In this document: positions 44,414 through 44,604 of the stretch, one piece after another | Layout of the letters: every line of letters starts with the position of its first letter | Numbering within the stretch: the stretch's first letter is position 1 | NCBI RefSeq assembly: GCF_030144855.1 | Contig: NC_082710.1 | Span: forward strand, 149,234,001 to 149,298,000 | Direction of reading: 5' to 3' | Length of the DNA: 64,000 nucleotides | Source: Hypanus sabinus | Lineage: Eukaryota | Made by a program: the position numbers and the translations under genes | Notes under the pieces: model-generated | Seen by the model: only the letters and a program-made list of their open reading frames with translations | The model's database searches: none | What the model was told of the DNA's origin: nothing

Positions 44414-44604
44414 CTTCTGACAAAGGAGAATCCTTTGAGAGAGGAAGTCCTTACACTTCCTGCCCCTACACTTCCTCCCTCACCACCATTCAGGGCCCCA
44501 GACAGTCCTTCCAAGTGAGGCGACACTTCACCTGTGAGTCGGCTGGTGTGGTATACTGCATTCGGTGCTCCCGGTGTGGCCTTTTATATATTGGTGAGAC
44601 CTGA
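44414..44604 (+). CDS. MHC class I gene A exon 7: TSDKGES fused in frame to Penelope-derived sequence (63 aa)
   Basis: cacag|CT acceptor identical to B; homology to B ends at 44434; frame continues to ..YCIRCSRCGLLYIGET-TGA. Confidence 0.7.

Follow-up and report, generated by a model that had tools for sequence, protein, structure and literature searches.

An accidental read-through into a decaying Penelope-like element probably explains the chimeric last exon of a stingray MHC class I unit

Terminal exons derived from transposable elements (TEs) and genes truncated by TEs are both known, and retrotransposon insertions with target-site deletions have been described for L1. In SETMAR a host gene has gained a transposase domain, and selection has kept the fusion; captured domains of this kind are complete, conserved across species and expressed. 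The U-lineage (UAA-type) class I genes of rays and sharks share a conserved end, TSDKGESSSNSSA-x-A. Canonical EN+ Penelope-like elements (PLEs; Neptune/Nematis-type) carry a CX2-5CxxC linker and a GIY-YIG endonuclease with an internal CCHH motif (Craig et al. 2021, PMC8557442). Canonical PLE endonucleases combine a linker finger, a CCHH with its two Cys within the GIY-YIG core, and downstream catalytic residues R/H/E/N (PMC8557442).

How does a class I unit whose last exon runs into a PLE compare with these systems? The window, the whole 64-kb stretch of Hypanus sabinus (Atlantic stingray) DNA that we analysed, holds two class I units, A and B, and the leader exon of a third, C (table 1). It contains no N runs. 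Its class I exons are 100% identical to parts of the RefSeq proteins XP_059826592.1, XP_059826593.1 and XP_059826594.1. Leader exon 1 is identical to the N-terminus of XP_059826592.1, and the spacing of the two leader exons (17044 versus 59066) equals that of two isoform starts of the RefSeq gene and fits its coordinates. The regions upstream of the two leaders are homologous (13473–17234 and 50964–59246). A first intron of about 20 kb follows leader exon 1; both leaders lie 16–20 kb upstream of their alpha1 exons, so that long first introns are normal at this locus, and all of its class I exons are phase 1. A leader exon for unit A near ~37259 was considered and rejected, the real one being at 17044.

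Unit B lies directly after unit A. Its alpha1 exon begins at ~46374 and its first AATAAA is at 50177. Unit B (44909–49333) has neither a leader exon nor a promoter of its own. The two units differ in span, 7.2 kb for A and 3 kb for B, because introns 2 and 3 of A (37800–42270) contain long minisatellite arrays, G/T-rich and C/T-rich, that enlarge them and also create spurious long ORFs on both strands. Relative to A, the copy of the intron-1 end in unit B contains about 1 kb of extra DNA (45242–46230) with minus-strand reverse-transcriptase-like ORF fragments, probably a LINE remnant. Tandem-repeat arrays occupy 5469–6517 (period ~96) and 24807–25523 (period ~41), with 94–96% identity between repeat copies.

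Table 1. Features of the class I locus and of the Penelope-like elements in the window.
Feature	Positions	Strand	Basis or remark
Leader exon 1, MMLRLLLLALLCGGVSG	17044–17092	+	six-frame motif search; start of the gene containing unit A
Unit A alpha1, intact, both splice sites good	37410–37670	+	tblastn 100% to P0004; splice contexts
Unit A alpha2, intact	40543–40815	+	tblastn 100% to P0004; splice contexts
Unit A alpha3, canonical donor lost	42273–42537	+	A/B alignment, donor scan, RefSeq models
Unit A transmembrane exon, in RefSeq X1 and X3	42829–42930	+	splice contexts, RefSeq models
Unit A cyt1, AVCFSAENEGYNPTK, splice sites intact, in 0 RefSeq models	44124–44168	+	
Unit A last coding exon, remnant (T)SDKGES	44414–44435	+	acceptor context identical to that of B
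Junction stretch FERGSPYT	44436–44458	+	poor alignment to PLE; 12-nt near-duplication inside
PLE fragment, 5'-truncated	44459–44885	+	blastn to three local copies; alignment; BLASTP E 1e-27
TGA ending the chimeric ORF	44602–44604	+	CpG-to-TpG change; CGA/CAA in other copies
1-base insertion (frameshift) in PLE ORF, near 44680	44678–44688	+	next tail-frame stop TAA 44686–44688
Bases (23) matching neither PLE nor A intron 1	44886–44908	+	
Unit B start, matching A intron-1 end	44909–45241	+	matches 36931–37247, 87%
Unit B last coding exon	49287–49333	+	canonical end TSDKGESSSNSSALA and stop
Reference PLE ORF, 370 aa	52018–53130	−	RT C-terminal part with YIDD, CX3CX2C linker, complete GIY-YIG endonuclease
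Leader exon 2 of unit C; rest of C past window end	59066–59114		

What follows the remnant of the last exon of unit A? Translation from 44416 reads SDKGES and then 56 open codons up to the TGA; the leading T of TSDKGES comes from the split codon A|CT that spans the cyt1 donor and the 44414 acceptor. The first-pass annotation of this DNA had claimed that the canonical eight-residue end after TSDKGES is missing, that 56 residues stand instead, and that these include five Cys with a CxxCxxC among them. Translation and the comparison of A with B bear this out, the Cys motif reading CIRCSRC. The transposon origin that it proposed for the tail also holds: residues 15–62 of the exon share 83% identity with the endonuclease part of the reference PLE ORF (BLASTP, E 1e-27), and a database search with the tail for junction-bearing proteins returned PLE endonuclease fragments only, in databases that seemingly do not cover stingray transcript assemblies. 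The TGA does precede the conserved Arg, as had been stated. Two further claims need narrowing. The tail was said to be mostly in the reading frame of the transposon, which is true of the PLE part, but the first ~8 residues, FERGSPYT, have no clean alignment to PLE and may be either diverged PLE linker or filler. And a CGA at the position of the stop, attributed to the other local copies, is found in one of the three, that at 11.7 kb, whereas CAA stands there in the other two, at 52 kb and 58 kb.

The PLE fragment contains the last Cys of the linker zinc finger, the GIY-YIG endonuclease region, a stop TAA at 44840–44842 and, after it, a short 3' tail. Identity to the other copies is 85% for 11691–12061, 77% for 52400–51991 on the minus strand and 72% for 58050–58320. 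Its 3' end is no more than ~15 bases away from the ends of the other local copies; together with the 5' truncation this is as expected for a real retrotransposed copy. The architecture of the family, reverse transcriptase followed by a C-terminal GIY-YIG endonuclease, is displayed by the reference ORF and not by the fragment. No hammerhead ribozyme was detected in the window with Rfam at the gathering threshold, at which minimal PLE hammerheads may escape the models. Five PLE pieces lie within the 64 kb. One of them is a 64-base linker snippet in the 3' flank of unit B (50052–50115), about 60 bases before the AATAAA at 50177 and 95% identical to 58023–58086. A single ancestral PLE present in both A and B was considered, as was filler at a duplication junction; the snippet has the 58-kb copy as its nearest match and probably belongs to another subfamily than the fragment in A, whose nearest match is the 11.7-kb copy, and the snippet was therefore treated as probably independent. 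Upstream of leader exon 2 there are also two inverted PLE-containing segments (51712–52561 and 57890–58633), about 88% identical, one of which keeps the 370-aa reference ORF.

Could the chimeric product be a nuclease? The translated tail keeps one Cys of the linker finger, two core Cys and one more, and the first ~19 residues of the Pfam GIY-YIG domain; the Pfam match is weak (E 0.25) because only these 19 residues are present. The GIY…YIG core with two Cys of the CCHH is there (VVYCIRCSRCGLLYIG, 44545–44592). The catalytic R, H, E and N and both His of the CCHH lie past the TGA at 44602 and partly past the frameshift near 44680, and the remaining endonuclease sits in another frame (ORF 44534–44842). 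With no complete zinc-binding motif and no catalytic residues in the tail, the chimeric product cannot be a nuclease. Recoding of TGA as selenocysteine is known in some PLEs (PMC8557442). At the TGA of the tail we reject it, since the codon aligns to R, K or Q and not to Cys, and arose by CpG decay.

Is the junction a simple insertion? DNA similarity between A and B, followed exon by exon, breaks off at 44434 (A) and 49307 (B). It restarts at 44909, at sequence that matches the intron-1 end of A itself. After the PLE fragment neither the remainder of the exon nor a counterpart of the 3'UTR of B was found, and the plain insertion of a PLE into the exon is thereby rejected. Absent from unit A are the last eight codons, the stop, the 3'UTR and the polyA signal; absent as well is all DNA between A and a point ~0.5 kb before the alpha1 exon of B, that is, up to the last ~0.5 kb of its intron 1. 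We conclude that a larger rearrangement has brought unit A up against unit B, which has no leader, and that the junction is one border of this rearrangement. The canonical end of A is gone, as the first-pass annotation had it, but its word for this, 'replaced', is too mild.

If the tail has a use, is the PLE-derived part constrained? The other two frames entering the PLE stop after 34 codons and 1 codon. Only the element's own frame stays open, and the in-frame join is thus a 1-in-3 chance event; once in that frame, a run without stops is to be expected. Compared with the closest copy, mismatches amount to 8 of 106 sites (7.5%) in the translated part and 27 of 261 (10.3%) after the stop (Fisher p = 0.56). 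The differences in the translated part are four synonymous and four non-synonymous. This mismatch comparison gives no sign of purifying selection on the PLE-derived coding part, at the low power that 106 sites afford. Between A and B dN/dS is 0.47–0.69, which is no gauge of recent constraint. Changes between CGA and TGA relative to the closest copy go in both directions, that copy having a CGA-to-TGA change of its own elsewhere, and the codon after the TGA has itself changed from CGC to TGC. This pattern marks the TGA as ordinary CpG decay.

In what state is the rest of gene A? A functional U-lineage class I gene needs a complete exon set with usable splice sites; in A the canonical alpha3 donor is lost, and lost in A only, the corresponding site in B being CTG G|GTAAG. 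The other splice sites of A are intact, including the acceptor at 44414, which is identical to that of B, and no stop interrupts the alpha1, alpha2, transmembrane and cyt1 exons. At 42585, 48 nt downstream of the lost donor, lies the GT of a strong cryptic donor, CTG|GTGAGT, whose use would add 16 codons in frame. Such a gene also needs the C-terminal SDKGESSSNSSA-x-A end, its own stop, a 3'UTR and a polyA signal, all of which A lacks. No AATAAA or ATTAAA occurs from 44414 to 46373, where alpha1 of B begins, and only weak variants of the signal lie between the TGA and that exon. The alpha1–alpha2 region of A has not evolved faster than its Hemitrygon relative (10 versus 12 unique changes), which indicates that the 5' half may still be used or that the damage is recent. 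Judged from its sequence, this half of the gene is not obviously dead, and its lesions may be recent or tolerated.

What do the relatives of unit A carry at this position? Across species its alpha1–alpha2 region is closest to XP_072885447.1 of Hemitrygon akajei (85.5%) and XP_072115033.1 of Mobula birostris (83.2%), which also share its leader sequence. A second H. sabinus locus (P0044/P0047), about 86% identical over the same region, is a close paralog in the same genome; further paralogs are 62–78% identical. The two cross-species relatives and five M. hypostoma isoforms end canonically, in TSDKGESS(S/P)NSSA-x-A. The end SSNSSA(T/L/M)A is found in models from Hypanus, Hemitrygon, Mobula and Pristis, and indeed in essentially all ray models, a few evidently truncated ones excepted. 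The canonical tail is therefore the ancestral state, and a conserved one, from which that of A is derived. A GIY-YIG domain occurs in none of 108 class I relatives.

RefSeq merges A, B and C into one gene of 61.7 kb, running from 17044 to ~78755, past the end of the window; isoforms X1 and X3 have two transmembrane segments. These two models (XP_059826592.1 and XP_059826594.1) start at leader 1 and skip the alpha3, cyt1 and last exons of A. They consist of alpha1 of A with or without its alpha2, the transmembrane exon of A, a cyt1 identical to that of B, and then C from alpha3 to its end. Comparable multi-unit class I models of 476–654 aa exist in Hypanus, Mobula and Pristis. None of the RefSeq isoforms uses the exon at 44414 or has a PLE-derived end, which shows that a message ending in the PLE had no support in the annotation pipeline. 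The merged isoforms are probably chimeric models of a tandem array. As descriptions of three-unit proteins they are of doubtful biology, and they weigh little as evidence on real transcripts.

These observations are best explained, with a probability that we put at roughly 0.7, if the 56-residue tail arises by accidental read-through into a 5'-truncated, decaying PLE fragment at a rearrangement breakpoint in the class I tandem array. It looks like PLE-associated damage in an already impaired class I copy and not like a newly recruited tail. From the anatomy of the junction we infer how and in what order the rearrangement took place and what becomes of the transcript, as follows. Either a PLE insertion was accompanied by a large deletion, or a later deletion had its ends in the last exon of A and at or in a PLE within the first intron of the next gene. 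From A such an event would have removed the last eight codons, the stop codon, the 3'UTR and the polyA signal, and with them would have gone the intergenic DNA and, from B, promoter and leader exon as well as the greater part of intron 1. Joined by a 1-in-3 chance to the frame of the PLE, the reading frame would have stayed open until CpG decay made the TGA. Since five PLE pieces lie in 64 kb, a breakpoint beside a PLE is unremarkable.

Because A has no terminator of its own, a message that includes the exon at 44414 must continue into unit B. A stop upstream of further splice junctions is a typical trigger of nonsense-mediated decay. In an A-to-B read-through message the TGA would lie upstream of later splice junctions and would probably make that message a target. 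Against reading the exon as a mere lesion stands its intact acceptor, by virtue of which it may well be spliced in.

Where might such splicing lead? Transcripts from the promoter of leader 1 could run through A into B (and C) and use a donor borne by the PLE, so that the exon would become a cassette. In a 180-nt version the exon would span 44414–44593 and end at the donor TTG|GTGAGA (GT at 44594), phase 1 to phase 1, excluding the TGA; in a 120-nt version it would span 44414–44533, with the donor at 44534. Either would add 40–60 residues from the PLE, in frame, before the class I exons that follow. In a simpler version alpha1–alpha2 of A would be joined to the alpha3-to-tail exons of B or C and the exon at 44414 skipped. 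The PLE part does contain phase-compatible, consensus-like donors, and all class I exons are phase 1; A has no terminator and B no leader; and X1 and X3 string together exons from all three units, as similar multi-unit models do at other ray class I loci. The donor scores, however, come from a simple matrix, PLE-derived residues appear in no model and in no database protein, and chimeras made by Gnomon in tandem families are often artefacts. We regard read-through splicing of this kind as unlikely, and use of the exon as a cassette, though conceivable from the sequence, is unsupported. The full combination, a fused A–B read-through unit that joins alpha1–alpha2 of A to downstream alpha3-to-tail exons and has an optional 180-nt cassette adding a 60-residue Cys-rich insert, strikes us as very unlikely.

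The first-pass annotation had offered exaptation in progress or a disabling lesion. On the former reading the Cys-rich, PLE-derived end would be a used and selected alternative tail that alters trafficking, turnover or signalling. It can point to 56 codons open in frame behind an intact acceptor, and to peptide-binding exons that are intact and not accelerated. Weighing on the side of the lesion are the lost stop, 3'UTR and polyA signal, the lost alpha3 donor, and the absence of the exon from every annotated isoform. The domain is partial and without complete motifs; conservation is no higher in the translated PLE part than beyond the stop; and the canonical tail persists in the closest relatives, in three species. 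Nor did reading through the 56 residues reveal a YxxPhi or acidic di-leucine sorting motif, and nothing in the analysis supports the suggested effect on trafficking or signalling. The lesion is thus the favoured half of that proposal, and exaptation, which is unsupported, is most improbable. That the join of exon, PLE and intron is a read mis-join in a repetitive MHC region seems extremely improbable: tandem paralogs and abundant PLE copies do make the region hard to assemble, yet the window has no N runs, its spacing fits the RefSeq gene coordinates exactly, and the PLE fragment, at 72–85% identity to the other local copies, is too divergent for collapse.

As accidental read-through at a breakpoint, the chimeric exon records an ordinary kind of event, a TE-associated rearrangement that truncated one copy of a fast-turnover MHC class I array. 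The value of the case lies chiefly in annotation: such a rearrangement accounts for the merging of three class I units by RefSeq, with its chimeric isoforms, and flags the 3' half of A as non-canonical. The case would matter more if the PLE-derived exon were really used, or if the peptide-binding exons of A were routinely joined to the alpha3-to-tail exons of a neighbour. Exon sharing of the latter kind would be unusual among class I genes; with the cassette added, the A–B unit would contain a transposon-built alternative exon within an exon-sharing MHC class I gene pair.

How, then, does the locus compare with the systems described at the outset? Unit A follows the same exon plan as the U-lineage class I genes of rays and sharks and differs from them in having no alpha3 donor, last eight codons, stop or 3'UTR. 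The local PLE ORF resembles the EN+ elements in its RT with YIDD, its CX3CX2C linker, its GIY…YIG core with two internal Cys and its downstream conserved block; unlike them, the fragment in A is dead, has no RT, and carries a nonsense codon and a frameshift. As in SETMAR, a host ORF is fused in frame to an enzyme domain encoded by a TE. The PLE piece, however, is about one quarter of the domain, has no catalytic residues, is under no detectable constraint and is absent from the models of related species. The likeness to TE-derived terminal exons is that the element supplies the last codons and the stop after truncation of the host exon, with flanking host DNA deleted. The locus differs from them in that this PLE comes without a polyA signal and that, through the deletion, two tandem paralogs are joined into what is potentially one transcription unit.
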